Of a stretch of 26,447 bases of DNA, positions 1 through 22,700 are shown in pieces. A program made the position numbers and the translations under genes. The stretch comes from Macrostomum lignano. Its lineage: Eukaryota. How positions within the stretch are numbered: position 1 is the stretch's first letter; every line of letters begins with the position of its first letter. The notes below the pieces were generated by a model. It ran no database searches. It worked only from the letters and a program-made list of their open reading frames with translations, and had not been told where the DNA came from. The DNA lies in assembly GCA_002269645.1 (NCBI GenBank), contig NIVC01005092.1, positions 1 through 26,447 on the forward strand, given 5' to 3'.

Positions 1-614
1 TTTTGTTGCATTTTTAAAATTCCAGCAACAAGAAGTAAGCCATCAGCAAGCAAGCATTCAATAGTACAAACATGTTTTCAGAGCAGTGCACACCCTTTGG
101 AAAATTAGCTCATCTTTTGACGTTAAATTTGTCCCTGCATATTTAAACAAATTACCATGACAACAATCGTTGTTCCGGTGTTGCGTAAAACTCCTTTAAA
201 AAGCTATTCAAAAAAGCCATAGGAGTTAACTTATCAGTTTTAGTTCCATTTAAGTAAAGATTATCTCAACAAATTTATCAAAAAAGTAAAAATAAACACA
301 CAAAATATCATTTTTAGTTAATTTATACAGCTCTGACGCAAATTCATGTATAATAAGCAATATTACCAGCACACAAAATGTTTATATAATTTTGTATTTA
401 GCCGCTTAAAATATAACAGAGCGACGATTTGAAGAAAGCCATACGTATTGTAACTGTGTTTTGGCTTCTGCGGTTGGATTAAAGATCATACGCTTTAAAT
501 CTCAGTCCTCAAAAAACTAAATTGTTAGTCTCATAAATATTGGCGCCGATAAATTACAGTAAAAAGAAACAGCGCTTTCTGTTTTACGGTACACTTTTTC
601 TCAAAACTAAATAT

Positions 615-1753
615 TTAGTCTGAGTCACTGGAACCGGAACCGCCATCTGATTTTGAATTTGGCTTTGATGCCGACTTCCGAGAGCCTGATTTGAAGCTAC
701 GACCAGATGACTTCCTAGATCCGTCATCTCGAGACTTGGCAGACTGTCTTTTAATTTTTAACTTGATGCTGACCATGAGCGTCCTTCTGTTTCACATCGG
801 CCTGTACTTGATTTCGCTTCTGTGAATCATCCCCAGCATTGAATTGAAGTTGGATGCCACCTGAGGCATGCGATTTCTCATCCGATTGCTGATTTGCTGG
901 TACCACCACTGGCTGTTCAACTTGCACAGCACCTGGCTGTACAGAAACAAGAACACCTGCTGGTTGCCCAGCGGTACTACATGTGGTTCCTGACTTTGCG
1001 GTGCTTCAACTGGTTTTTCCTCAAGATGTGGATCTTTTCAGCTGGTGATGGTTCTTCAGCTGGTGGTTCTTTTTCAGCTGGTGATGGTTCTTCAGCTGGT
1101 GGTTCTTCGGCTGGTGGTTCTTCAGCTGGTGGTTCTTCGGCTGGTGGTTCTTCGGCTGGTGGTTCTTCGGCTGGTGGTTCTTCAGCTGGTGGTTCTTCGG
1201 CTGGTGGTTCTTCAGGTGGTGATGGTTCTTCAGCTGGTGGTTCTTCGTCTGGTGGTTCTTCAGGTTGTGATGGTTCTTCAGCTGGTTCTTCAGCTGGTGG
1301 TTCTTCAGCTGGTGATGGTTCTTCAGCTGGTGGTTCTTCGGCTGGTGGTTCTTCAGCTGGTGATGGTTCTTCAGCTGGTGGTTCTTCGGCTGGTGTCTCT
1401 TTAGCTGGTGGTTCTTCAGTGGCTGGCTCTTCGGCTGGTGGTTCTTCAGCTGGTGATGGTTCTTCAGATGGTGGTTCTTCAGCTGGTGGCTCTTCAGTGG
1501 TGGCTCTTCAGCAGCAGGTTCCTCAATGGGTGGTTCTTCTTCAGCTGATGGTTCCTCCACTGAAGCTTCACCTATAGTCGCGGCATCAGCTCCTTCAGCT
1601 CCACCAGACCTAGAGATTGTAACTGCAGCTGCTCCAGTCCCCTTCCATCCATTCCCGCGACTTTTCTCTTTGTCTGGTTGGTCTGGATGCTCAGGGTGCT
1701 CAGGATGTTCCGGTGTGCTGGATGCCTGCAAAAGAGCGTACTCGTACTTTAAA
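615..1753 (-). CDS. CaM-like gene exon 4: EEPPA repeat and Ser/Lys-rich tail (frameshifted in this sequence)
   Basis: Acceptor ttcttgtag|T is in phase with exon 3 (54-nt intron). Protein-like text continues across frames to ...SDGGSGSSDSD* (TAA 617-615). Confidence 0.6.
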
Positions 1754-3461
1754 CTACAAGAAAACCCATGGTCACTTTAAAAAAAATAAATTTCTATTTA
1801 ATCTCACCCTTTCCGTCGCATCTCTTCTTTCGTAGTCTGAATCAGCTGATTGATGTCAGTTAAAAGAATCGCGGCAAACTCTGAAGAGAAATCAATTGAA
1901 TGCACAAACTAGACCAGTCTATATTCTTACTCGAACTTTTATTTCGCGTACAAATGCAATGCAAGCAAGGTGTTCTTGCGCGCTAAAATTCACCTTCATA
2001 GTCGATACGGCCGTCTCCGTTTTTGTCCACAGCGCTGAGCAGTTCGTCGAACTCCTCCTCGGAAAGCTCCACGGACCCCATGCTGTAGATGGCGTCGCGC
2101 AGCTCCTCCCGGTCCAAGTAGCCGCTCTGGTCTTTGTCAAACACCTGGAAGCTGCTCACCAGCTGCTGGCGCACGTCCGCCTCCGGCTTGCAAAGACGCG
2201 ACATCAGCGAGGCGAATTCTACAAAGTCCATGCTGCCGCTGGCGTCCGTGTCGCTCTCCGACAGCATCTGCTGGATTTCCTCCTGGCTTTCCGGTGCCTG
2301 GTGGAAGTCATGGATTGTTGACGTTAGTTGGTCGGGTTTTCGGGGACAACTTCAGACAGAAGAGAGAGAATTACTAATATCCGTAACCTGAGCACACACG
2401 CACACGCTAGGCTAAGAAGATTAGGTAAGCTCCAACTGCACTCTCACCTGGCCTGAAACCTGCAGACAGCTGTAAAGCTCTCCGGCATCGATGCTGTTGG
2501 ATCCATCCGCGTCGAATAGCTTGAATGTGCGATAGTACTTCTTCGCTTCCTCCGCCGACACGCCCGCTGCTGAAAGAGCCTCGTGGTAGTGCTCCGGCAC
2601 CTCAAATCTGTCCGTCCCTTCCTGGTGGCGGCCGGAGCCTGCTCTGCTGCCGCTTGCCTTGCTGCCGTCCCTGCCACCTTCTCTGTAACCCTTTTTTCGA
2701 TTGGCGCTTCCCTTCCGACTGTCTCCGTCACCGAATTTTTCTCTTGCGCTGCCTTTCCTGCTGCCTCCTCTGCCTTGTCCGTCACCGTTTTGCTCTCTTG
2801 CGCTGACTTTCCTGCTGCCTCCTCTGCCTTGTCCGTCACCGTTTTGCTCTCTTGCGCTGACTTTCCTGATGCCTTTCTTCCCGTCACCTTTCTCACCTGC
2901 TTCTTCAGCTGCTACTTCGGCTGCTTCACCTGCTTCTTCGGCTGCTTCTTCAGCTGCCTCACCTGCTTCTTCGGCTGCTTCCTCGATTGCTTCTTCGGCT
3001 GCTTCACCTGCTTCTTCAGCTGCTTCTTCGGCTGCTTCACCTGCTTCTTCAGCTGCTTCTTCGGCTGCTTCTTCGGCTGCTTCTTCGGCTGCTTCACCTG
3101 CTTCTTCAGCTGCTTCTTCGGCTGCTTCACCTGCTTCTTCAGCTGCTTCTTCGGCTGCTTCTTCGGCTGCTTCACCTGCTTCTTCAGCTGCTTCTTCGGC
3201 TGCTTCACCTGCTTCTTCAGCTGCTTCTTCGGCTGCTTCACCTGCTTCTTCACCTGCTTCTTCAGCTGCTTCTTCGGCTGCTTCTTCGGCTGCTTCACCT
3301 GCTTCTTCAGCTGCTTCTTCGGCTGCTTCACCTGCTTCTTCGGCTGCTTCACCTGCTTCTTCAGCTGCTTCTTCGGCTGCTTCTTCGGCTGCTTCTTCGA
3401 CTGCTTTTTCAACTGCTTCGTAAGCTGTTTCTTGAGCAGCTTCCACAGCTTCTCCGTCCAT
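615..3461 (-). CDS. Calmodulin-like 4-EF-hand protein with acidic N- and C-terminal repeat domains (about 843 aa if frameshifts are corrected)
   Basis: Exons 3461-2448, 2297-1994, 1880-1808 and 1753-615, all with GT..AG introns and compatible phases (0,1,2). EF loops DADGSNSIDAGE, DTDASGSMDFVE, DKDQSGYLDREE and DKNGDGRIDYEE. The phase-1 intron in YE|E matches the calmodulin intron position. ATG is in AAAATGG context with an in-frame TAA just upstream. The last exon needs 4 single-base corrections. Confidence 0.85.
1040..1500 (-). repeat. Coding repeat GCTGAAGAACCACCA (AEEPP)n
   Basis: Tandem 15/18-nt units seen directly. Confidence 0.95.
1808..1880 (-). CDS. CaM-like gene exon 3
   Basis: Acceptor ttctcttcag|AG completes the EF4 exit helix (EFAAILLTDINQLIQTTKEEMRRK); donor GG|GTGAGA. 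Confidence 0.8.
1994..2297 (-). CDS. CaM-like gene exon 2: EF-hands 2-4
   Basis: Acceptor ttccaccag|GCA; reads APESQEEIQQMLSESDTDASGSMDFVEF...DKNGDGRIDYE; donor G|GTGAAT. Confidence 0.92.
2448..3461 (-). CDS. CaM-like gene exon 1: (EEAAEEAG)n repeat, basic RKxS region, EF-hand 1
   Basis: Open ORF 3461-2421; donor CAG|GTGAGA at 2448/2447. Confidence 0.9.
2890..3410 (-). repeat. Coding repeat (GCT/GCC/GGT)GAA(GAA)GCA (AEEA/GEA)n
   Basis: Tandem 9/12-nt units seen directly. Confidence 0.95.
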
Positions 3462-4073
3462 TTTGCCCAGTTATATGTTGACCTTGATTCGCAAGTGACT
3501 TATTCAAAAGCCTCGCCGCTAGCTTTCAGTTAAATCTACTCGAAACAGTATCTCGTTTCGGTGAAGTTTTTTGCGCAAAGTTGAGCTTCCTAAGGCAAAA
3601 ATACTCTAAGACTAAGAGTAAGAGATAGAAAGGTGTAGAAAAAGATCGGAGAGAGACCCGTTGCTAAGTAGACATTTTCATTTTCTATAGAGTGCCTTAA
3701 CAGTCTGCCCGCCGAATAGCAGTGCAGCAGCTCTTGTGCAATGCGTTCGCCCTCAGCTGCCGCCAGTGTGCCACTTGCAGAGCAAGAGCGAAGTGAGAAA
3801 TTGCTAGCAGTAGCTTAGCACTTTGGCCAGTAGGGAGCCCCGTCAACTGTGCCACAGTTCTGACACTAGGGGGAAAGACAGACAATCAGAGCCTGCACTA
3901 CCTTCGCGCTGAGCTGTCGGCGCGCAGCTTGGCAGTTTTTAGTGCAATTATCATTTTCTAGAGCTTTTAACAATGCGGCGTTCTTATTTAGCATCACAAT
4001 GTACGGTGTAAGCAACTTCATACGAGCGTAAGTTGTTGAGCATGAGTCCAAGTTACTCGTGATTATTCCAAAT

Positions 4074-4787
4074 TCACTGCTGATTGCCTCGACGATTCCT
4101 ACTACGCAACGCTGCTGGCAGCGCTGGAAGGCCGACAGTTTCCATCGGCAGGTCCGCGATAACCGCGAAGGGGGCGGTGGTCACTTCGCCGAGGCCGCAG
4201 CTGTAGCGCGAGTAGAGCTGCTGACGGATTCTCGGTCCGGTGCGGCTGAACAGCTCCCAGCCGGTGAGCTGCTGCTGTTGCTGGGGCTTCGCAATCCGGA
4301 CAGATGAGTCATCTCTCTGTTGCGCCGCCTGCACCACGCGGCCCAGGTTCTGCCGCAGCAGATGCCAGCGCCGGCGGGCTCGAAGCTGCTGATACCTGAG
4401 CTGCTGCTACTGCTGCGCTCCGGGACTCTTCTTAACGCTGAAGGTCTCCGTGCCATCCGGACCCGTCGATGCCGTCGCCGCCGTCGCCGCTGCCTCCGGC
4501 GCCTCTGCAGTCTCCTGCCGCTTGGCCCGCAGGCGAGTTTCAATCAGAGCGCGTCGAAAATTCCGGCTAAAGTTCTGCCAGAGGACGCTGCCGCCGGTGC
4601 CGACGCCGCTGCCCGCCGCTCCGAAATCCTCCGACGGTTTACTAATCCCATCGTCTATGGCCGAGCTCTGCTGCTGTTCCGGCAGCTCTAGCAGCCGATG
4701 CAGTTGGTGGTGCTGCCGCCTCCAATGATGATTCGGCTTCGATCTGCCATGCCCAGCAGAGCTCAGCCGCAGATGCTGCTGTTGCAT
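4074..4787 (-). pseudogene. Unknown Gln/Arg-rich protein ORF interrupted by one in-frame TAG (nonsense allele, pseudogene or read-through)
   Basis: ORFs 4931-4407 and 4337-4074 are in the same frame and separated only by TAG at 4409-4407 inside a CAG run. Codons are GC-rich and coding-like; ATG at 4787; acceptor-like ...cttgccgcag| at 4802. Confidence 0.6.
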
Positions 4788-5429
4788 GCTGGCTATGGAC
4801 ACTGCGGCAAGCCGAGAACGCGATGAAAGATTAATCTGGCTGGCGAGTTGAATAAGCGCTGGCGCGCAGGTACATGTACCGCTTATTACTGTACAAACTC
4901 TGACATTATCGCTGCAGATGACGCTTCTCACAATCGCGAATGCATGTATTTATCGATGGAAGGAATAGCTAAGTTAAAATATATGTGCTAACCATAATAT
5001 GTGTATACACAGAAATATATATTGTATCAATTGTACTGAATGTTGCTATAGAAACGCCAGCTCACGGTGCGTTTGTTGCATGGGCGCGCGTGTAGCAAAT
5101 GAAAAACCTGACACAGGTGTGAGAGATTATTAATTACAGCGGACTGCAAACTTACGTGACCTGCGACCCGCTGCATGTGCAAGCATTGCAGGCATTAAAT
5201 ATTAACAGACAAAGGATTACAGTTGGAAGGCTGGTTGGTGAGTTCCGCATGCGCAGACTAATTCGTACATAGCTGGACGCCATGTGTAGATGAGAAGATG
5301 ATGAGAAGTCATGGATAATGCGACTCAGGGCAGGCGGATGCAGGAATTAACGGCTTAGATCAGATCTCGGCCCGGATTTGAGAATTCTGCGGTGGAAACC
5401 CCCAAAAACACAGTCAGATATTCGGGATA

Positions 5430-6345
5430 CGGAGACTCAGGATTGTGAGATTCGGAAATTCAGGATTGTAGGATTCGGAAACTCGGGATTGTGGGATTCG
5501 GAAACTCGGGATTGTACTCGTAGGATTCGGAAACTCGGGATTGTAGGATTCGGAAACTCGGGATTGTAGGATTCGGAAACTCGGGATTGTAGGATTCGGA
5601 AACTCGGATTGTGGATTCGGAAATTCAGGATTGTAGGATTCGGAAATTCAGGATTGTAGGATTCGGAAATTCAGGATTGTAGGATTCGGAAATTCAGGAT
5701 TGTAGGATTCGGAAATTCAGGATTGTAGGATTCGGAAATTCAGGATTGTGGGATTCGGAAATTCAGGATTGTAGGATTCGGAAATTTAGGATTGTAGGAT
5801 TCGGAAATTCAGGATTGTAGGATTCGGAAATTCAGGATTGTGGGATTCGGAAATTCAGGATTGTGGGATTCGGAAATTCAGGATTTTAGGATTCGGAAAT
5901 TCAGGATTGTGGGATTTGGAAATTCAGAATTTTACATGTCTGATTCAGAAATTCTGGATTGCAGGATTCCGAAATTCATGATTGCAGTACTGCAGATTGC
6001 AGGATTGTAGGATTTGGAAATTCCGGATTTAGGATTCGGAAATTAAGGATCGTATAATTCGGAAATTCGGAATTGAATTCCAAAATTCAGGATTGCATTT
6101 GAAAATTCGGGATTGGATTCAGAAATTCAGGATTGGATTCGGAAATTCAGGATTGTAGGATCAGAAATTCGGGATTGTATAATTCGAAAATTCGGGGTGG
6201 ATTCCGAAATTCAGAATTGTAGGATTCGGAAATTAAGTATTATAGGATTCGGAAATTCGGGATTGTATAATTCGGAAATTTGGGATTGGATTCAGAAATG
6301 CAGGATAGGATTCAAGAATTCAGGATTGTGGGATTCCGAATTTCG
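5430..6345. repeat. 23-bp minisatellite GGATTCGGAAATTCAGGATTGTA, degenerating after ~5925
   Basis: Period 23 (e.g. cggaaattca at 5641 and 5664); intergenic. Confidence 0.95.
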
Positions 6346-6869
6346 GGAGCTACATGTGCTTCAGCCGGGATCTGTTTAAAGGGCCGGAAATAATAAAAAC
6401 GCCAGCCCAAACGAAACAAAATTCGAAACGGTACTTTCAATCCACAGAAGCGGCAGTTCGATCAGACTGGATAGCAAAAAGTGTATTGTGCTAGTATTAT
6501 ATAATATTTCTTACACATTGTTATTAAAGCATTCGATGAACAGCTCCAAGCGGTCAAAGTGTCTAATTAATATTAGCAAAACAACCAATTTTAATGATTT
6601 GGAAGTTGTTTAAAATGTTTATAGAGCCGAATATTGCAAACAGCGGAATACGGTAAATGCTCGGCAGGAACTTGCGCGGCTTTTCTAAGAAACAAAAAAC
6701 GGAATTAATGCGCAGCGAGCCTTTTTTGGTAGGGGAATAAACTCAAGTTTCCACAACACTGCATCACGGACAACTCTAAAGTACAGGGACGCTGCACTCG
6801 CAAGTCTAGCATTAGTTTCAAAAAATACATTTAACTTCAGATATGATCTCTAATCACCATTTTTTAAAC

Positions 6870-6875
6870 TTTATT
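6870..6875 (-). terminator. Candidate ACSL polyadenylation signal AATAAA
   Basis: First canonical minus-strand AATAAA that I found downstream of the ACSL stop (7933). Confidence 0.35.
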
Positions 6876-6906
6876 ATTTACTGAACTTCAATTGCGAGTT
6901 CGGAGG

Positions 6907-6914
6907 CTGAGTCC

Positions 6915-6947
<33 letters not shown>

Positions 6948-7693
6948 CCATCATGATCACCATCATCATCATCATCATCACCATGATCACCATCATCATG
7001 ATCATCATCACCATCATCATCATGATCATCATCACCATCATCATCATGATCACCATCATCATGATCATCATCACCATCATCATCATGATCACCATCATCA
7101 TGATCATCATCACCATCATCATCATGATCACCATCATCATGATCATCATCACCATCATCATCATGATCACCATCATCATCATGATCATCATTATCATTAT
7201 CACCATCATCATCATGATCATCATCACCATCATCATCATGATCACCATCATCATGATCATCATCACCATCATCATCATGATCACCATCATCATGATCATC
7301 ATCACCATCATCATCATGATCATCATCACCATGATCACCATGATCATGATCATCATCACCATCATCATCATGATCATCATCACCATCATCATCATGATCA
7401 CCATCATCATGATCATCATCACCATCATCATCATGATCACCATCATCATCATGATCATCATTATCATCATCACCATCATCACCATGATCACCATCATCAT
7501 GATCATCATCACCATCATCATCATGATCATCATCACCATCATCATCATGATCACCATCATCATGATCATCATCACCATCATCATCATGATCATCACCATC
7601 ATCATCATGATCATCACCATCATCATCATGATCATCACCATCATCATCATGATCATCACCATCATCATCATGATCATCACCATCATCATCATA
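6907..7693. repeat. (CAT)n-based trinucleotide array with GAT/CAC interruptions and ~39-bp higher-order structure
   Basis: Seen directly; the His-frame translation shows alternating DHHHH and DHHHHHHH units. Confidence 0.97.
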
Positions 7694-7783
7694 CTGTCGA
7701 ATGTTGCAGGATTTGTGAGTGCAGCGTCTTTCTCATCATCATACTGTCGAATGTTGCAGGATTTGTGAGTGCAGCGTCTTTCT
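7684..7783. repeat. Perfect 50-bp tandem duplication
   Basis: 7684-7733 is identical to 7734-7783 (catcatcatactgtcgaatg...gcgtctttct). Confidence 0.95.
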
Positions 7784-7932
7784 ACTTTGATTGTCCATCA
7801 ACTGCAAAAAATGACAGACTTTGCACGCTACTAACAGTAGAGTCAACAGGATATCTAGTGGGAAGTTTAGGGAGTTTTTAAATAATCTCCTCTGATTAAT
7901 GAGGCAATGGGGTGATCAGGCGACACGGCGCC

Positions 7933-8073
7933 TCACGGCTCCACCTCTGCGTACATGGCGTCGAAGGCGTCGGCGAACCGCTTGCGCAACTGCGGCCGCT
8001 TCAGCTTCATCGTGGGCGTCATCAGGTCGTTCTCGGCGCTGAAAGGCTCGGGGTGCAGCAGGATGGCCTTCAC
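7933..8073 (-). CDS. ACSL: ACSL exon 9 (terminal)
   Basis: Reads VKAILLHPEPFSAENDLMTPTMKLKRPQLRKRFADAFDAMYAEVEP*. Confidence 0.93.
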   Translation of the reverse strand: MKAILLHPEPFSAENDLMTPTMKLKRPQLRKRFADAFDAMYAEVEP

Positions 8074-11000
8074 CTGGCGAGGGTTGTTGAGGTGGAGGCG
8101 ATGTTGAGTTTATATTTTAAAAAGCTTAGGCATGAATTGAAGTTAAGACACTCAGAATCACTCAAGATATCTCAACGGAAACCTAAAATGGTCTCAAAGT
8201 TAACTGAGACTTGATGCCTTTGGGTCTCACTCACGCTTCTTATTTTACAGCGTTTATAATTGCTTCATTTCGTTCTTCTTTAATTCACAGCTCCACCGAT
8301 TGACCGCCTGGTTTGTGTGTTTCTTTATTGCCGTTATTTTTTTCTTTTTCTGTGTTACCTTATATACTATTTTGTGTATTATACATTTTAGTACGCTTTC
8401 CATTTGTGTATATATCCTGTTTGTAAGGCTTTATTAGGCTTTATTTTGTATCGCTGTTACATTACAAGTTATTTAAATTAGAGCTTTTGGTATCCAATAT
8501 GGCCATGCAGTTTATTTGTTTAAGTGCACTCCCTGTTCCCTGTGACTCCTCAGCCAGTGTTCAGAGTTTGCACAAGTTTGCGCAACTTATCCTGTGCAGT
8601 GTACGAAATTTGAGTACGTATCCGTTTCTTCTTCTCGTTCCAATGTCAGATGGGGTCGAAACACAGGAAACAAATTCTTCAAAACGTCAAATATCAGTTC
8701 TTTTTTCCATACCTCCTGCAAAAAATGGTTACCTTTCTCGTGTTTTTATACTTTTTTTAGACTACGATTCAAATCCGTCACCTGTAAGTCTGTGTTCTTG
8801 CGGCTAAGATTTCTGCAGGCTTAAAAAAGTTGTCTATGATAGCAAGCCGGCAAAGCTGTGGGCCATGGTACCGGGTTCGATAGGGTTAAACTTATCAGAT
8901 CACCGAAAGCCAGCCACCCTGTGAACACTGAAGGTTATCGGAGAAAACCTAAGGTCACCTCAGATCACCATTCAAGGTCACCTCAGATCACCATTCAAGG
9001 TCACCTCAGATCACCATTCAAGGTCACCTCAGATCACCATTCAAGGTCACCTAAGATCACCATTCAAGGTCACCTCAGATCACCATTCAAGGTCACCTAA
9101 GATCACCATTCAAGGTCACCTCAGATCACCATTCAAGGTCACCTCAGATCACCATTCAAGGTCACCTAAGATCACCATTCAAGGTCACCTAAGATCACCA
9201 TTCAAGGTCACCTCAGATCACCATTCAAGGTCACCTCAGATCACCATTCAAGGTCACCTCAGATCACCATTCAAGGTCACCTCAGATCATCATTCAAGAT
9301 CAACTCAGATCACCATTCAAGGTTACCTCAGATCACCATTCAAGGTCACCTAAGATCATCACTTTAGACCACATGATATCACCCGTCAGTCCAAGCTACT
9401 GGAAGCGGCAGCCCAGTCAGCCAGCAAATCCAGCAACCAACCTGCTCGAAGCTCTGCAGCCCCTTCTGCTTGCCCAGCTGCTGCAGCTCGCCCAGCAGGT
9501 GCGCCTTGAATCCGGCGCTGCCGCAGGCCGCGGCCAGCAGCTCTGGAGGCGAATCGCCAGCCGCAGCCGCCGTGTCCGCGGGATTCTTGGCCAGCCAGGC
9601 CTTGGTGGCGTCCAACGTTGGCACCACGACGCCGAGCAGGCAGGAGCGCTCGCTGCGGCCATCAACAAAGACCTGATCGATGGCCGGGTTCAGGCAGTAC
9701 ACCAGCTCGATCTTCTCCGGCGCGATGTACTCGCCCTGGGCCAGCTTGAACAGGTGCTTGACCCGGTCAACGATGCGGTAGGAGCCGCCGGGGAGCAGCT
9801 GGGCGATGTCGCCGGTGTGCACCCAGCCGTCGGAGTCAAGAGTCTCGGCCGAGCGCTCCGGCTGCTTGAAGTAGCCAGCGAAGCAGGTCGGGCCGCGGAT
9901 GCACAACTCGCCGCGACCGTCAGCCTCCGCATTCGGACAGTCGGCGTCGGGGGCGTCAGCGAGGCGGACTTCAATGCCCAGCATCGGCCGGCCGGTGTGG
10001 TTGCTGGCCGGGTCGCCGGGCCGCTGGCACAGGCCGAGGCCGCAGGTTTCCGTCTGGCCGAAACCCTGCGGGGGTCGGGGAGGTGAGGGACGCTCGGATG
10101 GATCGATAGCAGAGAGGTTGCAGGAAGAGTGGGAGCGAGGGGTGAGAGACGGGAGTTAAAAGGAGTAAAGGGGAGATCAAAATGGGAGCGACAGGAAGGA
10201 TGGAGAGGGAGCGGGAGAAGTAGAGGAAGGATGGAGAGGGAGCGGGAGAAGTAGAGGGAGGATGGAGAGGGAGCGGGAGAAGTAGAGGGAGGATGGAGAG
10301 GGAGCGGGAGAAGTAGAGGGAGGATGGAGAGGGAGCGGGAGAAGTAGAGGGAGGATGGAGAGGGAGCGGGAGAAGTAGAGGGAGGATGGAGAGGGAGCGG
10401 GAGAAGTAGAGGGAGGATGGAGAGGGAGCGGGAGAAGTAGAGGGAGGATGGAGAGGGAGCGGGAGAAGTAGAGGGAGGATATAGAGGGAGGATAGGTAGG
10501 GAAAAGTAGGCGAGGGAGAGGAAGAAGTAGAGTTACGGAAGACTGTAGAGAAGTGCACCAGTAGTTTAAAAACGTCAGCCCCAAAGCACTGTCCCCCCTA
10601 TTAAGTCGCCGAATTCTTCAACACAAGAAGTGCAGCGCTGGTCCTCCAAAAGTTCGCCCAGCTCTCTCACCTGCACCACCGGGCAGCCCAGCGCGGCCTT
10701 CACAAAGTTCAGCGTGTCCGCAGAAATCGGCGCCCCGCCAACGGCTACAAAGCGGACGCGGCCGCCCAGGCCTTCCTGGACGCGGCGGAACACCAGCCGA
10801 TCCCACAGCGTGTCCTTGTCAACCCGGAGCTGCGACAGCCGGCGGCTCTTGCGGGACAGCGCCGTGTCAAGGATGGCCGACTTCAGCCGGCTGCCCGACA
10901 CCGCTGTCAGGGCGCGCTCGCGAATGCGGCTCAGGACCTGCGGGCGGCGGCCAGTGACAGCTGATTGGATGATGATTGGAAACTTTACTCCTGTCTCTCT

Positions 11001-14000
11001 ACACTGCTGAATCAACCATCTCCCTTCCTGATCTGCCCCTATCCCACCCTGATCCGCCCCTATCCCTCCCTGATCCGCCCCTATCCCTCCCTGATCCGCC
11101 CCTATCCCTCCCTGATCCGCCCCTCTGTCCCTCCCTGATCCGCCCCTCTGTCCCTCCCTGATCCGCCCCTCTGTCCCTCCCTGATCCGCCCCTCTTTCCC
11201 TCCCTGATCCGCCCCTCTGTCCCTCCCTGATCCGCCCCTCTTTCCCTCCCTGATCCGCCCTCTGTCCCTCCCTGATCCGCCCCTCTGTCCCTCCCTGATC
11301 CGCCCCTCTGTCCCTCCCTGATCCGCCCCTCTGTCCCTCCCTGATCCGCCCCTCTGTCCCTCCCTGATCCGCCCCTCTGTTCCTCCCTGATCCGCCCCTC
11401 TTTCCCTCCCTGATCCGCCCCTCTTTCCCTCCCTGATCCGCCCCTCTGTCCCTCCCTGATCCGCCCCTCTGTCCCTCCCTGATCCGCCCCTCTTTCCCTC
11501 CCTGATCCGCCCCTCTGTCCCTCCCTGATCCGCTCTGTCCTCCCTGATCCGCCCTCTGTCCCTCCCTGATCCGTTCCTCTGTCCCTCCCTGATCTCTCTC
11601 CCTCCCTGATCTGCCCCTCTCTCCCTCCCTGATCCGCCTCTCTCTCCTCCTTGATCCATCCGCCCGATCCCGCAGCCGCCCACCTTAGGCACGGCAGCCA
11701 TGAAGGTGGGCTGACACTCGCGCAGGTCGTCCATGAGGCCGGCCCGATCGCCGCGAAAGAATCCCATGGACAGGCCGTGGGCGAAGGCGAACAGCTGGCA
11801 CATTCGCTCCAGGATGTGCGCCATCGGCAGGTAGCTGAAGTAGCGGTCCGAGCTGTTCAACTCCACCGGGTGCTGCGAATTGGGGAATAGGGGATGGAGA
11901 TTCTGACACTGTGGATAGGGATTCTGATGCTGGGGATGGGGATTCTGATGCTGGGGATGGGGATTCTGATGCTGGTGGTGGGATTCTGATGCTGGGGATG
12001 GGGATTCTGATGCTGGTGGTGGGGATTCTGATGCTGGGGATGGGGATTCTGATGCTGGTGGTGGGGATTCTGATGCTGGGGATGGGGATTCTGATGCTGG
12101 TGGTGGGGATTCTGATGCTGGGGATGGGGATTCTGATGCTGGTGATGGGGATTCTGATGCTGGTGATGGGGATTCTGATGCTGGTGGTGGGGATTCTGAT
12201 GCTGGGGATGGGGATTCTGATGCTGGGGATGGGGATTCTGATGCTGGTGGTGGGGATTCTGATGCTGGGGGTGGGGATTCTGATGTTGGTGGTGGGGATT
12301 CTGATGTTGGGGGTGGGGATTCTGATGCTGGTGGTGGGGATTCTGATGCTGGTGATGGGGATTCTGATGCTGGTGGTGGGGATTCTGATGCTGGGGATGG
12401 GGATTCTGATGCTGGGGATGGGGATTCTGATGCTGGGGATGGGGATTCTGATGTTGGGGGTGGGGATTCTGATGTTGGTGGTGGGGATTCTGATGTTGGG
12501 GGTGGGGATTCTGATGCTGGTGGTGGGGATTCTGATGTTGGGGGTGGGGATTCTGATGCTGGTGGTGGGGATTCTGATGCTGGGGATGGGGATTCTGATG
12601 CTGGTGGTGGGGATTCTGATGTTGGGGGTGGGGATTCTGATGCTGGGAATGGGGATTCCGATGATGGGGATTGTGATGTTGGGGATGGGAATTTTGATGT
12701 TGGGATGGGGTCAAATTTTATCGTGTTTTCACCTTAAAAGTGTCCTCTTTAATAGTATCCGTGACCAGGTGCACGCCCTTGACAAGGTTGTCATTTGTCA
12801 GCATGACGCCTTTGGGTTGGCCTTGATTGAAAACGAAAAAAATAACGTTAAAAATAAATTAGCAAATCATTGGATTAAAGCATTTGACTATACGAATTCC
12901 GACTTAAGCCCCCTCGTTCCCAACAGACCAGTGGTGCCGCTGGTGTAGCAGATCACAGCCAAGTCGCTGGGCTGCGGCCTCCTGTTGGCGTCAGCGTCCT
13001 CCTGCTGCTGCCCATCACCGCTGTTCTCCTTCTGCTCCCGCCGCTGCTGAAGCAACTCCCGGCCCTTGGCAATCGCATCAACGTAGCTGATAACCGCCGC
13101 ACCGGCCGGCTGCTCCGCCTCCGACGGCTCGGCCACAATCAGCCGGATGGCCTGTTCGGCCGACCCCAGCTCGGACACTGTGGCGGCCTGCTTGTCCGAG
13201 CGGCAGAACGCCACGCTGAGCTGCGTCTCCTACGGCAGGCAGGGGCAGAAGGAACTGGTTTAGTTGCTGGGGGGAACCGGCCTGGGATAGACTGAGGGGG
13301 GCTGAAGGATCAGGGCTGAGGTGGCCTGAAAAATCAGGGCTGAGGTGGCCTGAAAAATCAGGGCTGAGGTGGCCTGAAAAATCAGGGCTGATGTGGCCTG
13401 AAAAATCAGGGCTGAGGTGGCCTGAAAAATCAGGGCTGATGTGGCCTGAAAAATCAGGGCTGAGGTGGCCTGAAAAATCAGGGCTGAGGTGGCCTGAAAA
13501 ATCAGGGCTGAGGTGGCCTGAAAAATCAGGGCTGAGGTGGCCTGAAAAATCAGGGCTGAGGTGGCCTAAAAATCAGGGCTGAGGTGGCCTGAAGGATCAG
13601 GGCTGAGGTGGCCTGAAAAATCAGGGCTGAGGTGGCCTGAAGGATCAGGGCTGAGGTGGCCTGAAGGATCAGGGCTGAGGTGGCCTGAAAAATCAGGGCT
13701 GAGGTGGCCTGAAAAATCAGGGCTGAGGTGGCCTAAATCAGGGCTGAGGTGGCCTGAAAAATCAGGGCTGAGGTGGCCTGAAGGATCAGGGCTGAGGTGG
13801 CCTGAAAAATCAGGGCTGAGGTGGCCTGAAAAATCAGGGCTGAGGTGGCCTGAAGGATCAGGGCTGAGGTGGCCTGAAGGATCAGGGCTGAGGTGGCCTG
13901 AAGGATCAGGGCTGAGGTGGCCTGAAGGATCAGGGCTGAGGTGGCCTGAAGGATCAGGGCTGAGGTGGCCTGAAGGATCAGGGCTGAGGTGGCCTGAAGG

Positions 14001-17000
14001 ATCAGGGCTGAGGTGGCCTGAAGGATCAGGGCTGAGGTGGCCTGAAGGATCAGGGCTGAGGTGGCCTAAAGGATCAGGGCTGAGGTGGCCTAAAGGATCA
14101 GGGCTGAGGTGGCCTAAAGGATCAGGGGCTGAGGTGGCCTGAAGGATCAGGGGCTGAGGTGGCCTGAAGGATCAGAGCTGAGGTGGCCTGAAGGATCAGG
14201 GCTGAGGTGGCCTGAAGGATCAAGGCTGAGGTGGCCTGTAGGACCAGTGGCTAAGTGGCTTAAAACCGTGAAAGACTACTTATTGACAAGTAGAGTACAT
14301 AGAAAATGGTCAGTTAAATAATTCATCAAATCCGAGGCCATTTCTCACCTGCAGAATGTGGCTGCAGGCCTCCCGGCCCAAGGTGTCGTACAGCGGCACA
14401 ATGACCAGGCCGCTGGAGTAGCAGGCAAGCTCCAGGACAACCAGGCTGGCGCTGTTGCTGGAGAAGGTGCCAACAAAACTGCCCCTGGTCAGGCCCAGCG
14501 GCCCGGTCAGGTAGGCCGCCATTGCGCGCACTTCTTGAAGCACCTGCGTAAGGTAAACGGTGAGAGTAACTTTGCCTATCGTTTGATATCCAGGGGCCTC
14601 GTCATTAAATGAAGATTGAGGATTGACTGGGTTGCCCGTCTGTCTCTAGCCGTCCAGATGGGATCCAGACTCGGCATGGTTACTGATTGGCATGCAGGGA
14701 TCCGACTACCGACTATTAGCGCCCCCTGCACTTGGCAACACAATGCTTTGATTGACTTCGTCGCTTGAACTTGCACTGTGTGGCAGGGTGATGCAGGCAG
14801 CAGCAGCTGTGCCAGTTTCTTGCGAAACTGGCCGAACCGACATCACGCTTTGAAAAGCCACAGATTCGGATGCTAAGAGAACAGAAACAGAGAAAAGGAG
14901 GAGAGGCGGTTCAATTATTAGACCGCGCAAATTTTGCTTTACGAATGAAAATGGTAAGCGAAGTACTTTCGGAAGAAAAAACATTTTAGGAATATAACTA
15001 GGAATAGATGTGAGACTCAGAGAAGAGGGGGGAAGGGAGAGAAAAAGGAGAGGAAAGCGGAGAGGGAGAGAGAGAGTGGAGAGGAAGGGGAGGGGAGAGG
15101 AAGGGGAAAGGGGAGAGGAAGGGGAGATGGGAGAGGAAGGGGAGAGGGAAGAGTAAAGGGGAGATGGGAGAGGAAGGGGAGAGGGGAGGGGGGAGAGGAG
15201 GGGAGAGGAAGGGGAGAGGAAAGGGGAGAGGAAGGGGAGAGGAAAGGGGAGAGGAAGGGGAGAGGTAGAGAGAGGGGATAGGAAGGGGAAAGGGGAGAGG
15301 AAAGGGAGAGGGAAGAGTAAAGGGGAGATGGGAGAGGAAGGGGAGAGGAGGGGGAGAGGGGAGAGGAGGGGGAGAGGAGGGAGAGGAGGGGGAGAGGGGG
15401 AGGAGGGGGAGAGGAGGGGGAGAGGGGAGAGGAGGGGGAGAGGAGGGGAGAGGGGAGAGGAGGGGAGAGGAGGGGAGAGGAGGGGGAGAGGGGAGAGGAG
15501 GGGAGAGGGGAGAGGGGAGAGGAGGGGAGAGGGGGGAGGAGGGGAGAGGAGGAGGAGAGGGAGAGGAGGAGAGGGGAGAGGGGAGAGGAGGGGAGAGGAG
15601 GGGGAGAGGGGAGAGGAGGGGAGAGGAGGGGAAGGGAAGAGGGGGGAGGAGAGGAACGGAGGAAGATGGAGAAAGGATCATTATATGGGATAAAAGCAGA
15701 CAACGGGACAATTGATCACTTAAATCTGAGGTTTTTTGGCAAATGTTAGGAATTTGATCAAGGATGTGCACTGACTGGCACCTGAAGCTAACTTCTAGAG
15801 AACAGAAGTGCTTTTCACTCCTGGAGATGCAGTGCAGCCGTGGGAAAGAAGTTTATAAAATCGAAACTTCGATTGCTGTTTACACTGGAATAAGCAAACT
15901 GGCACTTGAAGCAGCATTAACAGAATCTTGCAGAAGAAAAATCAATTCCACTGAAAGTCGAACTGACGATTTAATACCAACTGGTGCTGATACTACAACG
16001 GAATGTACTATAATTAGAAACAGCAAGGAAGAAACTGTTAATTAGCATGTCACAGCCTCACCTCGCCATAGGTACTGTATACAAATGGAGCACTGGCTGT
16101 CTGGCGGGTGCCCAGGCAGGGCCCATCATGGCTGGCCGCCTCCAGGCCAGCAAGAAACAGGTCGAATGCCACGCGAGCTTCTGCCAGGGCTTTCTGCTGC
16201 TGCTGTTTTCCGCCGCTCTGCTGCTATGGGACAAAACGATTTGGGGAAAGGAATGTCAGTAATGGAATGAGGAGCTTGTGTCACTGTTATGTTTGATAAA
16301 AAACAGATCTTTGACTTTATAGCAATTTACTACTAAACTAAATGCTTGTGTAGATACTGCACATACATCCGCAAATGCTGGCCGACCTGGCTGATCTGGC
16401 CACCGTAAATTGTGGTAGACCAGGGGTAAGTTGCAAAAATGCCCATCCAAAATACAGATGTAGTACTAATTAGATGACAAGGCATTTAGCCTTAATAAGA
16501 CAGTTATAGTTACTCCTGCCGTTTACCCAAGTGTTAATTTTGCTTTAGGTTTCTTTCACAGGAAAGTCACATGGCCCGTGTAAATCAGGGGGGGGGGTTG
16601 CGCATGTTTGATACTGCAACTATACTATAGCTATAGTTATGGGAAATTACAAGTGGCAATTTTCATCTAGACCTAAAAAATGAGATTTATGACTATGGCC
16701 TATGGCTATGGAAGTTATTACTTGAAATAACTTGATATGGCTTATAATTAAGATACTGAATTTGTCAATTTGCCATAACAAACAACAAATAATATTAATA
16801 GATATTTGGCAAATCTAAATTATTCACATTTATTATGCCCAAATAATAATATACTTAACCAATCTTAATATTATAAAACAGAAACATTTATACTACTGGT
16901 CAATATTTTGACATTTTTTGAAGTTTGTTTAAGGTAAGTGGTACAAACAAAGCTATGAGTTGAACTGTAATTTCTGATTCAATCATTTTCAATATTAAAA

Positions 17001-19704: not shown

Positions 19705-22700
19705 CTGTTGGAGAATTTGATGGGGTTCAAGTTTATGTAATTCGTTTGTTTGAGACGAGTTGAGAGAGCATTTAATCCGACTGCAGTCTAATTAAAAATT
19801 GGTCAGGGGAGTTTAGGGCCTCCCAGAGAGTGACAGGGAAGGTGGGAGGAGAGTGGCAGGGGAGGCGGGAGGAGAATGGCAGGGGAGGTGGGAGGAGAGT
19901 GGCAGGGGAGGCGGGAGGAGAATGGCAGGGGAGGTGGAGGAGAGTGGCAGGGGAGGCGGGAGGAGAATGGCAGGGGAGGCGGGAGGAGAATGACAGGGGA
20001 GGCGGGAGGAGAATGACAGGGGAGGCGGGAGGAGAATGACAGGGGAGGCGGGAGGAGAATGATAGGGGAGGCGGGAGGAGTGACAGGGGAGGCGGGAGGA
20101 GAGGGACGGGAAGCGGGAGGAAGTGACAGGGAGGCGGGAGGAGAGTGAGGGAGGCGGGTGAAGAGTGACAGGGGAGGCGGGACAGCAGTGAGGCCCCAGC
20201 TCAGTGATGATGTTGGCCTCCCTCACAGTCTGGGCAGCGCCCTTGGTCTCTGGCAGGTAGTAGAGCGCGGCGCCGGCAAGAATGCCCATGCGATTGGGGC
20301 GGCCAGGGCGCCGTAGGCCGCCGCTGTTGAGGCCAGGATGAAGGGGCCAGCAGGGAGGAGATGCGGCCGATGGCGCTGCAGAAGAAGATACCAGTGTTCC
20401 GGATCGAGGTCGGGTAGACCTCTGCTGTGTAGTTTGTGATGATTGAGAAAGCGCAAGTAGCTGACAGCTTGGCCAGAAGGGCGAGAACGGTGTGAGAGAC
20501 GCTGCCTGTGAAAGAAGAGTCCGATAAATATTTCAATATTTGATGAAGCAGAGCAGAAGAGAGCAAAAATATGGATGTTACACGGCCCGATGTAAATTTT
20601 TCTAGAATAGCTAAGACTTTTTTGATACTGTAGCTTTATAGTGCTGTGGGACCTTGGCTACGAGCTGACTGACGCCTTGTCCAGAGAGCATGACTGACCC
20701 GGCCTCACGATGTCCTGCTGAGTTGTTAGATGCCGGCTGGGCAAGTGATCGGATTGGAGGCCTGCTGCCCTGAGCCTGTGCATGCAGGGACTGCGCAGAC
20801 GTTGACAAGGACGCGGGAGTGGTTACGTCATATAGTGACCTCGCCTTAAGGTGACGCAGCCTCCTTTTTTGACCGCGTGCGGCTGGCGGGCAAAAAAAAT
20901 CATTGTTCAAGACGGGATATAGCCCAACACTGAGTTGGACGCGTCCTTATTTAGTACATAAAAACTTTTGAGATTTAGTTATATAGACTACAGAAAAGAC
21001 AAGAAAGATCCGCACGGATGCAGCGGTCTATCCTATCTGTTACCGATGTCGAGATGCGATATGATTCACTTCACATTTTGCAACAATCTAATTATATCGA
21101 AAAGTATCTTGAAGGTCATTGAACCCTACTGGCAGGATTGCTCACCTGGAGTGAGCACAGCCACCGAGATTAGGCAGGCGCTAAGCATCGTGTATAAGAC
21201 GGCAATGGGAATTCTGCGTCCGACTTTCTCGGCCACAATCCAGGCCGTGACGTAGGCCGGGACCTCGATCAAACCGGACAGGACGGTGTTTATGAAGACG
21301 TCGCTGGCCAGGAAATCAGAGTCCAGGGATATGCTGTTGTAGTTTAAACTGATTGCGAACCTGTGCAGGCGTGAGGAAGTAGGAGGCAAAATTCTCTAAT
21401 TCGCTTCTTTTATTCTGTAAGCAGAGTGTCCCCATGGACTTTATCGAAGGGGGCAGAGCCTTATAACTATAATTAGCATTTCATACTGAGCATAGCAACC
21501 ATTTTTCAGTAAATGTAGAACTTTTTACGCCATACGAGCGTACAGGCGATACCTAAAGATCCCTAAAGATTAAAGATCCTAAAGTCCCTAAAGTCCCTAA
21601 AGACGGATGGGACTAAAAGTTGCAATAAATGTTAAATGTACATAGTATAAGCAGGTGCAAGACTTTGTCATTGTTAGAGCCAGTCATTATTTCGTGAAGC
21701 AACTAAGAAAACTAAGCATTAGCATGTTCCCAAAACTTTTACTCGGGAGGATGGTCGTTTTTGCGACACCCCTGAAGTAGTGTAAGAATAAATCTTTTGT
21801 TCAACAAAAGCTACAAAATCTTATCCATCGCGATACATTTTCCATACTAGACTCACCAGGCGCAGAACAAAATGAGGGACTTTTTTAGCATTATCCGGGT
21901 CCTGAACATTTCCGAGACGTTGCCTTCGCGACTGTGCTCAGGTGGCTGCGAGGTCTGGAAGCCGTAGGTCTGCGGGTTGAGAGATGGTGGAATTTTACTT
22001 CAGTGCGGGGTTAACTTTAAACTGAGTCACTCATCGTAGGTCTCGCTGGACTCACCAGCAACTCCTTGGCAGCGGTCGGGATGGTCCGGCCGTTCACTCT
22101 GGCGATGTTTTCGCACACGTAGAGGGCGTCGGTATACCGGCCGTGGGCGATCAGCCAGCGCGGCGATTCCTGCAGAAGACTGCAACGGTTGATCGGTTAA
22201 TCAACGGTTAATCATTGACCTATTGTATAAGAGTTAGAGTTGCATACATCTTAAGTTAGCTCTTGCTTTTCAAAGCTTGGAATCTAGGTCTTAATAATAC
22301 AGTACACGTCTTCACGTCTGTAGTTTTTAGTCTGGCAAAAGTGTCCCACCAAGCCAAAGTTATCGTAGATTCGCTTCTGCACTCACAAGTAGCAGGCAAT
22401 GTAAAAAAGGCAGGGCAGGCAGGTGAGCAGTTGCAGCCACCGCCACTGTCTCACTAGATAAGCCATACCGGCCACAGACATGTAGCCTAGACAATAGTAC
22501 AGCCACAGTAAATTGGCGACCAAAGCTCTGTGCTTGCAGCCGACAAACTCGGTGATGCACACAGTGGACAGAGATTAACTGTGGCGAAGATGCCGTGCGC
22601 AAAGTGCAGCCCCAGGTAGGAGAGGAAGTTCGGAGAGACGCTCTCCAGCAGAGTGAACAGGGCCTCCATCGCGCAGCTCACCAGCAGCACTGGTCGACGA

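Follow-up and report, generated by a model that had tools for sequence, protein, structure and literature searches.

A 26,447-nucleotide (nt) stretch of the Macrostomum lignano genome (assembly GCA_002269645.1, contig NIVC01005092.1, positions 1 to 26,447 of the forward strand; here called the window) carries on its minus strand, between positions 3461 and 615, a spliced four-exon gene with GT..AG introns, as seen when the reverse complement is read and translated. With respect to identity and architecture, we propose with a probability of about 0.7 that this is a genuine, transcribed, lineage-specific M. lignano calmodulin-like gene with two acidic repeat arms. Sequence comparisons indicate that the genome holds two or three nearly identical copies of it, if not more. 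A sister copy (L001) lies on GenBank scaffold NIVC01003121.1 of the assembly Mlig_3_7 and was found via the neighboring acyl-CoA-synthetase-like gene (Mlig003865g1). Exons 2 and 3 are, in addition, 100% identical to the UniProt entry A0A1I8HPY9 (P0001; 211 amino acids [aa]), which was automatically named "Troponin C." Public databases hold the gene only as an unnamed hypothetical protein and as misnamed fragments.

All elements of the gene given below lie on the minus strand. The start codon (3459 to 3461), read directly from the sequence, has an AAAATGG context, and an in-frame TAA is found 12 nt upstream of it (3473 to 3471), with no AG in between. Exon 1 (2448 to 3461; 338 codons, ending in phase 0) encodes the N-terminal arm, a linker, a lead-in helix, and the first EF-hand, and it closes with a CAG/GTGAGA donor that is used identically in the sister copy. 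It is followed by intron 1 (2298 to 2447; 150 nt, GT..AG, phase 0), which splits VSGQ from APES, and by exon 2 (1994 to 2297; 304 nt). Intron 2 (1881 to 1993; 113 nt, phase 1) interrupts the Glu440 codon, which specifies the last (12th) residue of the fourth EF-hand loop. Exon 3 (1808 to 1880) encodes an amphipathic helix that follows the fourth EF-hand (..EFAAILLTDINQLIQTTKEEMRRKG) and ends in a GG/GTGAGA donor; together, exons 1 to 3 form a single clean frame of 463 codons plus two bases. Intron 3 (1726 to 1807; 82 nt) ends in the acceptor TTTTGCAG, as in A0A1I8HPY9 and the sister copy, and its retention would bring in a TGA (1805 to 1803) that closes a 464-aa product (..RRKG). An ATTAAA directly after this TGA (1802 to 1797) was considered as the poly(A) signal of a short isoform and rejected: the sister copy has ATTTAAA, so the motif is not conserved and is probably not used as such. 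Exon 4 (615 to 1725) ends at a TAA (617 to 615), and it is open throughout in the sister copy and broken five times in the window.

The four EF-hand loops all match the PROSITE pattern PS00018, at residues 317, 354, 392, and 429 of the exon 1 to 3 product, and the same four matches are found in the product of the sister copy. The first loop (DADGSNSIDAGE) lies at 2478 to 2513, the second and third lie in exon 2 (2217 to 2252 and 2103 to 2138), and the fourth runs across intron 2 (1994 to 2027, completed by 1880 to 1879). Pfam searches with the product recovered EF-hand families and no other domain: EF-hand_7 (PF13499) over two stretches with a score of 102.7 bits (cutoff of 30; E value of 1.4e-29) and PF00036 with 84.8 bits. 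The best 60 solved structures in the PDB are all calmodulins or calmodulin fusions, aligned over four hands, with an E value of 4e-30 for the best single calmodulin. These matches bear out the reading of all four loops as canonical in an earlier note on this DNA. In an AlphaFold2 (AF2) model from the single sequence, the core forms four helix-loop-helix units, and a helix runs on from the fourth EF-hand to residue 463. Alignment with calmodulin revealed that the positions of the hydrophobic pocket are mostly hydrophobic, with several Met residues replaced by Leu. The core exons of the window and the sister copy differ by 12 substitutions in 554 nt, of which 8 are synonymous and 4 nonsynonymous, a pattern of purifying selection between the copies. 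On the basis of these sequence features, we assign the gene to the calmodulin-like four-hand group of the EF-hand superfamily.

The N-terminal acidic arm (2886 to 3461; residues 1 to 192) is an (EEAAEEAG)n repeat with 43% Glu, 42% Ala, and a net charge of -82. It is encoded by a tandem array at 2893 to 3443 with periods of 12, 33, and 78 nt and is nearly monomorphic in its codons (GAA outnumbers GAG by 80 to 2). AF2, run on the single sequence, renders it as one long helix (residues 3 to 188) with a predicted local distance difference test score of 70 to 89. Between the arm and the core lies a basic linker (2601 to 2885; residues 193 to 287, 95 aa) that is made up of Gly, Arg, Ser, and Lys, has an isoelectric point (pI) of 10.9, carries four RK[VG]S motifs, and is disordered in the AF2 prediction. 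It includes a 54-nt repeat in 2.8 copies (2724 to 2874). Both elements had been described in the earlier note and are present in the window, but only the arm has a counterpart in the sister copy: window positions 2626 to 2896 have no homolog there, and the linker is thus specific to the window copy rather than a conserved part of the design. The window has at this place an open, purine-rich stretch of 270 nt with the 54-nt repeat; positions 584 to 899 of the sister gene differ and hold an AT-rich 177-nt intron and 38 unrelated codons (PPPDYEVTRARIDELNAQLESEPLPEEETQRRPTRIRF), with homology restarting at CAGGAAGGGACGGACAG. The GCAG/GTGAGA donor of that intron is kept in the window (2897/2896). 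The window linker was therefore considered as an intron and rejected, since its in-frame acceptors have purine-rich upstream tracts (pyrimidine fraction of 0.15 to 0.30 versus 0.60 to 0.75 in real ones) and its sole good acceptor, CCACCAG, is out of phase.

Near its start, exon 4 has a 9-nt repeat encoding (HPE)3 (1681 to 1713), which the sister copy carries in 14 units; a unique spacer (..DQPDKEKSRGNGWKGTGAAAVTISRSGGAEGADAATIGEASVEEPSAEEEPPIEEPAAEEPP) comes after it. Next comes the C-terminal acidic arm (1040 to 1504; about 155 aa), an (EEPPA)n repeat with EEPSPA and EEPA variants in which Asp and Glu make up 38% (59 of 155 residues) and Pro about 32%, for a net charge of -56. At the DNA level this is a 15-nt array (1049 to 1539 in Tandem Repeats Finder) in which all variants of unit length are multiples of 3, exact EEPPA units differ at third codon positions only, and codon usage is again nearly monomorphic (GAA over GAG by 54 to 3; CCA in 54 cases to 2). 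The (EEPPA)n array recorded in the earlier note is thus real, with EEPPA read in one frame. Downstream are a nonrepetitive stretch rich in Pro, Gln, and Val (758 to 1034; DPHLEEKPVEAPQSQEPHVV..AGQPAGVLVSVQPGAVQVEQPVVVPANQQ...HGQHQVK), which occupies two frames in the window and one in the sister copy, and a basic Ser-rich end (618 to 757; ..KIKRQSAKSRDDGSRKSSGRSFKSGSRKSASKPNSKSDGGSGSSDSD) with a pI of 10.7 and the motifs RKSS, RKSA, and RQSA. None of the pieces of exon 4 has a Pfam match, and a protein search with its nonrepetitive parts returned A0A1I8HPY9 as the sole match, indicating that the distal tail lacks a relative outside this gene. In the window, however, three different frames are needed to read EEPPA, the "QPAGVLVSVQPGAVQV" tail, and the terminal ..SDSD, so that the protein of about 840 aa proposed in the earlier note is not encoded by a single open reading frame (ORF) there but crosses five breaks of ±1 nt. 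The acceptor chosen in that proposal, CTTGTAG (1754/1753; first exon base, 1753), opens a frame (..RRKGLKYEYALLQASSTPEHPEHPEHP...EEPAAEEPP, then LKSHQLKNHH(LKNHQ)n) that stops at 1021 and yields 707 aa. This acceptor offsets the first frame break in the window but meets a premature stop in the sister copy, so the segment that it adds, LKYEYALLQ(ASST), is most likely intronic. The acceptor TTTTGCAG (first exon base, 1725) is backed by both other copies.

The sister locus is a separate copy that is 88 to 99% identical to the window, depending on the segment. A gene has been called on its scaffold (11611 to 14458) with a 776-residue product and with start and stop codons homologous to those of the window gene (ATG and TAA). 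Our reconstruction of this copy, with the same three introns plus the 177-nt intron (GTGAGA..CCGCAG) in the linker region, gives exactly 776 aa. Its exon 4 is one open frame, G-HPA-(HPE)14 ... DQSDKEKSRGNG...EEPSAEEEPPIEE-(PPAEE)n-..AEKDPHLEEKPVEAPQSQEPHVVPAGQPGVFVSVQPGAVQVEQPVVVPANQQ...HGQHQVKIKRQSAKSRDD...KSGGGSSDSD, in the order (HPE)14, (EEPPA)n, the Pro/Gln/Val-rich stretch, and the basic Ser-rich end terminating in SDSD. The resulting protein has 221 acidic and 53 basic residues, a net charge of -168, and a pI of 4.1. According to the genome paper, the transcripts behind the GenBank models of Mlig_3_7 were derived from RNA sequencing (RNA-seq) by means of StringTie, TACO, and a de novo transcriptome, and their ORFs come from TransDecoder. 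Behind the 776-aa model there should thus be a transcript that includes exon 4 and does not end at the TGA after exon 3. The two-armed architecture is accordingly found intact in a transcript-derived model that spans the same region of the sister copy, while the corresponding ORF of the window is broken five times. A0A1I8HPY9 points in the same direction: it is spliced from RRKG to HPAHPEHPEHPEHPDQ and continues as ...EEPAAEEPP-T-EEPPAEEPPA, that is, in the EEPPA frame. This requires the acceptor TTTTGCAG, one more C at 1713 to 1712, and one more base between 1498 and 1497. The entry carries all six window-specific residues, and its frame is intact at the first two of the break sites.

An exhaustive HMMER (phmmer) search of 1.84 billion representatives revealed no close relative outside M. 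lignano; the best single-domain foreign matches are calmodulin-like and 36 to 44% identical. The nearest relatives are three short, armless M. lignano paralogs, Mlig028917 (228 aa), Mlig024099 (221 aa), and Mlig029060 (174 aa), with identities of 55, 36, and 39%, respectively, in phmmer and 54, 34, and 34% in a multiple alignment. They share with the gene several features that are absent from calmodulins, namely, a VPE.Y..AL..GV lead-in, an extra residue after GQxP (GQAP+1), a C/V-K/Q-P central linker, an L.TDI..MI helix after the fourth EF-hand, and a charged low-complexity tail. The lead-in, the GQxP insertion, the TDI..MI helix, and the charged tail are all found in the product described here. 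The paralogs lack the N-terminal arm, the (HPE)n and (EEPPA)n repeats, and the fourth exon, and they have basic tails rich in SR or KH. Homology of the ...GSGS..SDSD ending with Mlig024099 was considered and dropped, the BLASTP match being nonsignificant. To call this a known family would be neither right nor wrong: all of these relatives are uncharacterized "hypothetical" or "EF-hand domain-containing" proteins of the same species. Our literature searches found no mention of Mlig028917, Mlig024099, Mlig029060, Mlig003865, or the UniProt accessions, and the literature on Macrostomum calmodulin and EF-hand proteins yielded nothing on this gene.

The intron positions offer a further comparison with the paralogs. 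Mlig028917 has an intron at the same position and in the same phase as intron 2, and Mlig024099 lacks it; this site may be that of the last intron of animal calmodulin genes (in the Glu140 codon, judging from CALM exon sizes). Conservation of calmodulin intron positions has been described (PMC6171432), with the positions themselves given in the figures of that source. Intron 1 is shifted by exactly 12 nt between the window (2447/2448; ..LQVSGQ/AP..) and Mlig028917 (L002, 3159/4190; ..LQ/VMGQAP..), both in phase 0, for which intron sliding or fixation of an alternative donor is a possible explanation. Intron 3 is missing from Mlig028917, which encodes its helix and basic tail on one exon; the long gene has thus gained its fourth exon, which carries the acidic arm.

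Alignment of exon 4 of the window with that of the sister copy places the five frame-breaking differences at 1713 to 1712 (CC in the window versus CCC in the sister copy), between 1498 and 1497 (a base absent from the window versus G, with A implied by A0A1I8HPY9), at 1038 to 1035 (A4 versus A5), at 974 to 973 (CC versus CCC), and at 759 to 755 (A5 versus A4). Each is a change of ±1 in a run of two to five identical bases. The remaining length differences are multiples of 3 (3 nt near 958, 6 nt near 640, and 99 nt in the HPE units), and along the path of the sister frame, about 370 codons, we found no stop made by substitution and no indels of 2, 4, or 5 nt. Over the approximately 17 kb shared by the two scaffolds (window positions 1 to 14944 and sister positions 1 to 16936), repeat-rich blocks show almost as many 1-nt homopolymer gaps as substitutions: 36 versus 38 in one block of 3.2 kb, where the base is mostly missing from the sister scaffold. 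The cleanest 5-kb block has 4 gaps and 12 substitutions. Such a ratio is far higher than in ordinary biological divergence and suggests that a substantial number of indel errors persist in at least one of the assembled sequences. Both published assemblies were built from PacBio continuous long reads (CLR), with Pilon polishing; tandem repeats make up 15% of the genome, and 180 Mb of it lies in duplicates that are at least 95% identical. Moreover, for the sister locus, the older ML2 models (A0A1I8F511 and A0A1I8FI97) flip frames repeatedly where Mlig_3_7 is intact.

On this evidence, we consider the five frame breaks of exon 4 to be probably PacBio CLR assembly errors. A distinct but minority possibility is that the window copy is a truncated, decaying duplicate with real frameshifts, whose products would be a 514-aa protein via the acceptor TTTTGCAG (arm, linker, core, and 51 out-of-frame residues) or the 464-aa protein with intron 3 retained, the remainder of exon 4 drifting. 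The massive recent duplication of the genome would leave redundant copies free to decay; the linker of the window copy is restructured as well; and the unique parts of exon 4 are near neutral between the copies (4 synonymous and 12 nonsynonymous changes in 600 nt). This last pattern, in which amino acids change almost freely while the sister frame is kept, is typical of disordered tails. Against decay are the breaks themselves, which are without exception ±1 homopolymer changes, the pervasiveness of such differences between the two scaffolds, and a window-type sequence, A0A1I8HPY9, in which the first two sites are intact. A third reading takes the assembled frame at face value, such that the C-terminal repeat would be a basic arm of His, Lys, Asn, and Gln, (LKNHQ)n, in a 707-aa protein. 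In the window, no other reading runs without a break from exon 3 through the CTTGTAG acceptor, and the frame stays open for 236 codons, but any stop-free 15-nt repeat is open in more than one frame. Its acceptor runs into the premature stop of the sister copy, both A0A1I8HPY9 and the 776-aa model read EEPPA, and the variation among units is synonymous in the EEPPA frame only (GCT/GCC would give Leu/Pro in the other), so we regard it as hardly credible. Several points nevertheless weigh against our proposal of an intact, transcribed two-armed gene. The breaks all fall in exon 4, downstream of the first possible point of truncation, although exons 1 to 3 are richer in homopolymer runs of at least 3 nt (35 versus 24); such clustering has a P value of about 0.01 under uniform error and is the pattern expected of truncation followed by downstream decay. 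The 776-aa sequence is a reconstruction matched to the called model by its length and both ends. RNA-seq reads multimap between the copies, so expression of the window copy itself is putative, and A0A1I8HPY9 differs from the window within the repeat and may represent a third copy rather than the same locus. The single-sequence AF2 helix of the N-terminal arm may be overcalled, the exhaustive search found no ortholog outside M. lignano, and function is inferred from sequence only.

As to origin, we envisage an ancestor of about 170 to 230 aa with four EF-hands, the helix after the fourth hand, and a short charged tail, much like Mlig028917, Mlig024099, and Mlig029060. In-frame coding minisatellites would then have expanded at both ends, the 12-, 33-, and 78-nt units giving rise to the (EEAAEEAG)n arm and the 9- and 15-nt units to (HPE)n and (EEPPA)n on an exon of their own, the fourth, with the outcome of a protein of 776 to about 835 aa and a net charge near -170. 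The near-monomorphic codons and the unit numbers that differ between copies (3 HPE units in the window and 14 in the sister copy, between sequences that are about 97% identical) mark the arms, to judge from the sequence, as young, fast-changing coding minisatellites, which may therefore be tolerated rather than designed. The product has no predicted signal peptide or membrane segment: the maximum Kyte-Doolittle score of any 19-mer is 0.5 to 1.0, that of the first 25 residues is -0.4, and the N terminus reads MDGEAVEAAQE. A soluble cytosolic or nuclear protein is hence to be expected. As most pocket positions keep hydrophobic residues in the calmodulin alignment, the four canonical loops would bind Ca2+ and thereby open calmodulin-like hydrophobic clefts, and a Ca2+-dependent target-binding sensor in the cytosol seems the most economical reading of the core. 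The polyanionic arms could serve as long, nonglobular electrostatic or entropic spacers and as weak cation sinks, the N-terminal one being helix prone and the C-terminal one, at about one-third proline, extended. The basic linker of the window copy and the basic Ser-rich end would be candidates for intramolecular or partner contacts tunable by phosphorylation. This mechanistic part, a cytosolic Ca2+ sensor with polyanionic spacer arms, is offered tentatively, and we think it rather unlikely to hold.

A simpler view, to which we give somewhat short of even odds, is that the arms have no function of their own and are minisatellites tolerated at disordered termini of what is simply a calmodulin-like sensor. 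Minisatellites take up about one-third of the window, 15% of the genome consists of tandem repeats, the unit numbers vary between copies that are 97 to 98% identical, the codons are near monomorphic, the short paralogs do without arms, and unit lengths in multiples of 3 preserve the frame automatically. On the other hand, the four arrays within the coding sequence all have periods divisible by 3 and the commonest noncoding period in the window is 23 nt, which argues that they have at least been filtered for frame; both copies retain both arms at 150 to 200 aa; and each arm is consistent in its composition (E/A versus E/P). Should the arms be functional, they could turn a calmodulin-type sensor into a Ca2+-responsive polyelectrolyte, such as a cytosolic high-capacity buffer, a Ca2+-tunable spring, or a condensate scaffold, in which the E/A arm would switch from coil to helix and the E/P arm would form an extended brush; muscle, ciliary rootlets, and adhesive anchor cells are examples of the particular flatworm cell types where this might happen. 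Such a design is not known from any calmodulin-like protein, and we consider it quite improbable. Still further down is a secreted or mineralizing acidic scaffold, as had been suggested in the earlier note, or a lumenal high-capacity Ca2+ store of the calsequestrin type. The extreme acidity (221 Asp and Glu residues in 776 aa) does resemble that of low-affinity, high-capacity Ca2+ binders such as calsequestrin and SPARC domain I, but the lack of a signal peptide or hydrophobic segment, the in-frame stop located 12 nt before the ATG, with no AG in the interval, and the recovery of EF-hands only by Pfam speak against it and make it very unlikely.

The window has other features as well. On the minus strand at about 9379 to 12900 lies a long-chain acyl-CoA synthetase-like gene with an AMP-binding match and 46 to 49% identity to vertebrate ACSL1/6. 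Its sister-copy model, Mlig003865g1, is only 227 aa long, has no Pfam match on record, and is probably truncated because the introns are full of minisatellites. Several of these repeats within the introns give rise to long spurious ORFs (rich in His/Asp, Pro/Ser, or Gly/Arg). Farther along, at about 19800 to 23464 on the minus strand, are exons that by eye resemble an SLC22/organic-cation-transporter-type gene (MAPVHMEYEEVLEHIGSLGRYQIVLFNL..., ...AEVYPTSIRNTGIFFCSAIGRISS...), although its single exons have no Pfam match at 1e-3. Minisatellites were found at 5425 to 6348, 6915 to 7692, 8951 to 9358, 10193 to 10490, 11021 to 11657, 11890 to 12710, 13292 to 14259, 15024 to 15671, and 19826 to 20182, mostly with periods of 21 to 24 and 31 nt and in 16 to 41 copies each; a period of 23 nt recurs in several unrelated families. 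Upstream of the EF-hand gene, GC-rich ORFs on the minus strand (4074 to 4931) are fused to it in the ML2-derived A0A1I8F511 ("Calmodulin"; 486 aa), and the Mlig_3_7 annotation has no gene at the matching region. Rfam and tRNA scans of the window found nothing.

Unusual as the architecture is, a genome of this kind can be expected to contain coding minisatellites. If the arms matter, the gene would be an uncommon example of a calmodulin-type sensor that forms part of a very large polyanion, and it could reveal how Ca2+ sensing or buffering is modulated by low-complexity acidic repeats, in a flatworm model that is amenable to transgenesis, RNA interference, and in situ hybridization. If they do not, it is still a clean case both of coding minisatellites inflating proteins in a genome with 15% tandem repeats and of repeat-rich exons being scrambled by homopolymer errors in long-read assemblies, which make the assembled frame (here, LKNHQ) the wrong one. 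The locus also flags misnamed or frame-scrambled database entries (the "Troponin C" A0A1I8HPY9 and the "Calmodulin" A0A1I8F511).

Among known EF-hand proteins, the closest resemblance is to calmodulin, with which the core shares four canonical loops in two pairs and largely the same hydrophobic pocket positions. Calmodulin sensu stricto is a protein of about 149 aa that is more than 90% identical among animals. The present core differs from it in its identity of 36 to 44%, in the extra residue after GQxP, and in one more in the central linker, and calmodulin lacks extensions, whereas the products described here have 464 aa (exons 1 to 3), 776 aa (sister copy), or about 835 aa with repeat arms on both sides. 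Troponin C, the automatic name of A0A1I8HPY9, is not supported by the structure search, in which all of the best 60 PDB sequences are calmodulins or calmodulin fusions. A centrin is disfavored as well: a single match is so named (P0008; 32% identity), and the N-terminal extension of centrins is short and basic, in contrast to the acidic N terminus found here. Identity, length, and PDB ranking thus all place the architecture outside these three families, as the earlier note had held. Ilborin, a TIM barrel with an EF pair that has a homolog in M. lignano, is of unrelated architecture.

More distant parallels concern the arms. Calsequestrin and the acidic domain of SPARC similarly present dense carboxylates that could bind many Ca2+ ions weakly, but they are lumenal or secreted and are either folded (calsequestrin) or placed beside an extracellular EF pair (SPARC), whereas the protein described here has no signal peptide. 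Extended arms rich in Pro, Glu, and Ala on or beside an EF-hand module are known from the A1-type myosin essential light chain, insect troponin-H, and the PEVK region of titin, and these are the basis of the idea of an elastic element or tether; however, those arms are tens of residues long (light chain) or reside on other subunits, and they share no sequence similarity with the arms described here. The fused-type S100 proteins (trichohyalin, filaggrin, hornerin, and repetin) have a two-hand S100 module at the N terminus and are confined to vertebrate skin. Their sequences are unrelated to that of the M. lignano protein, which lacks a Pfam S100 match and has a four-hand calmodulin-type core in the middle of the polypeptide. 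What the two nevertheless have in common is the joining of an EF-hand module to very long, fast-evolving, low-complexity tandem repeats.

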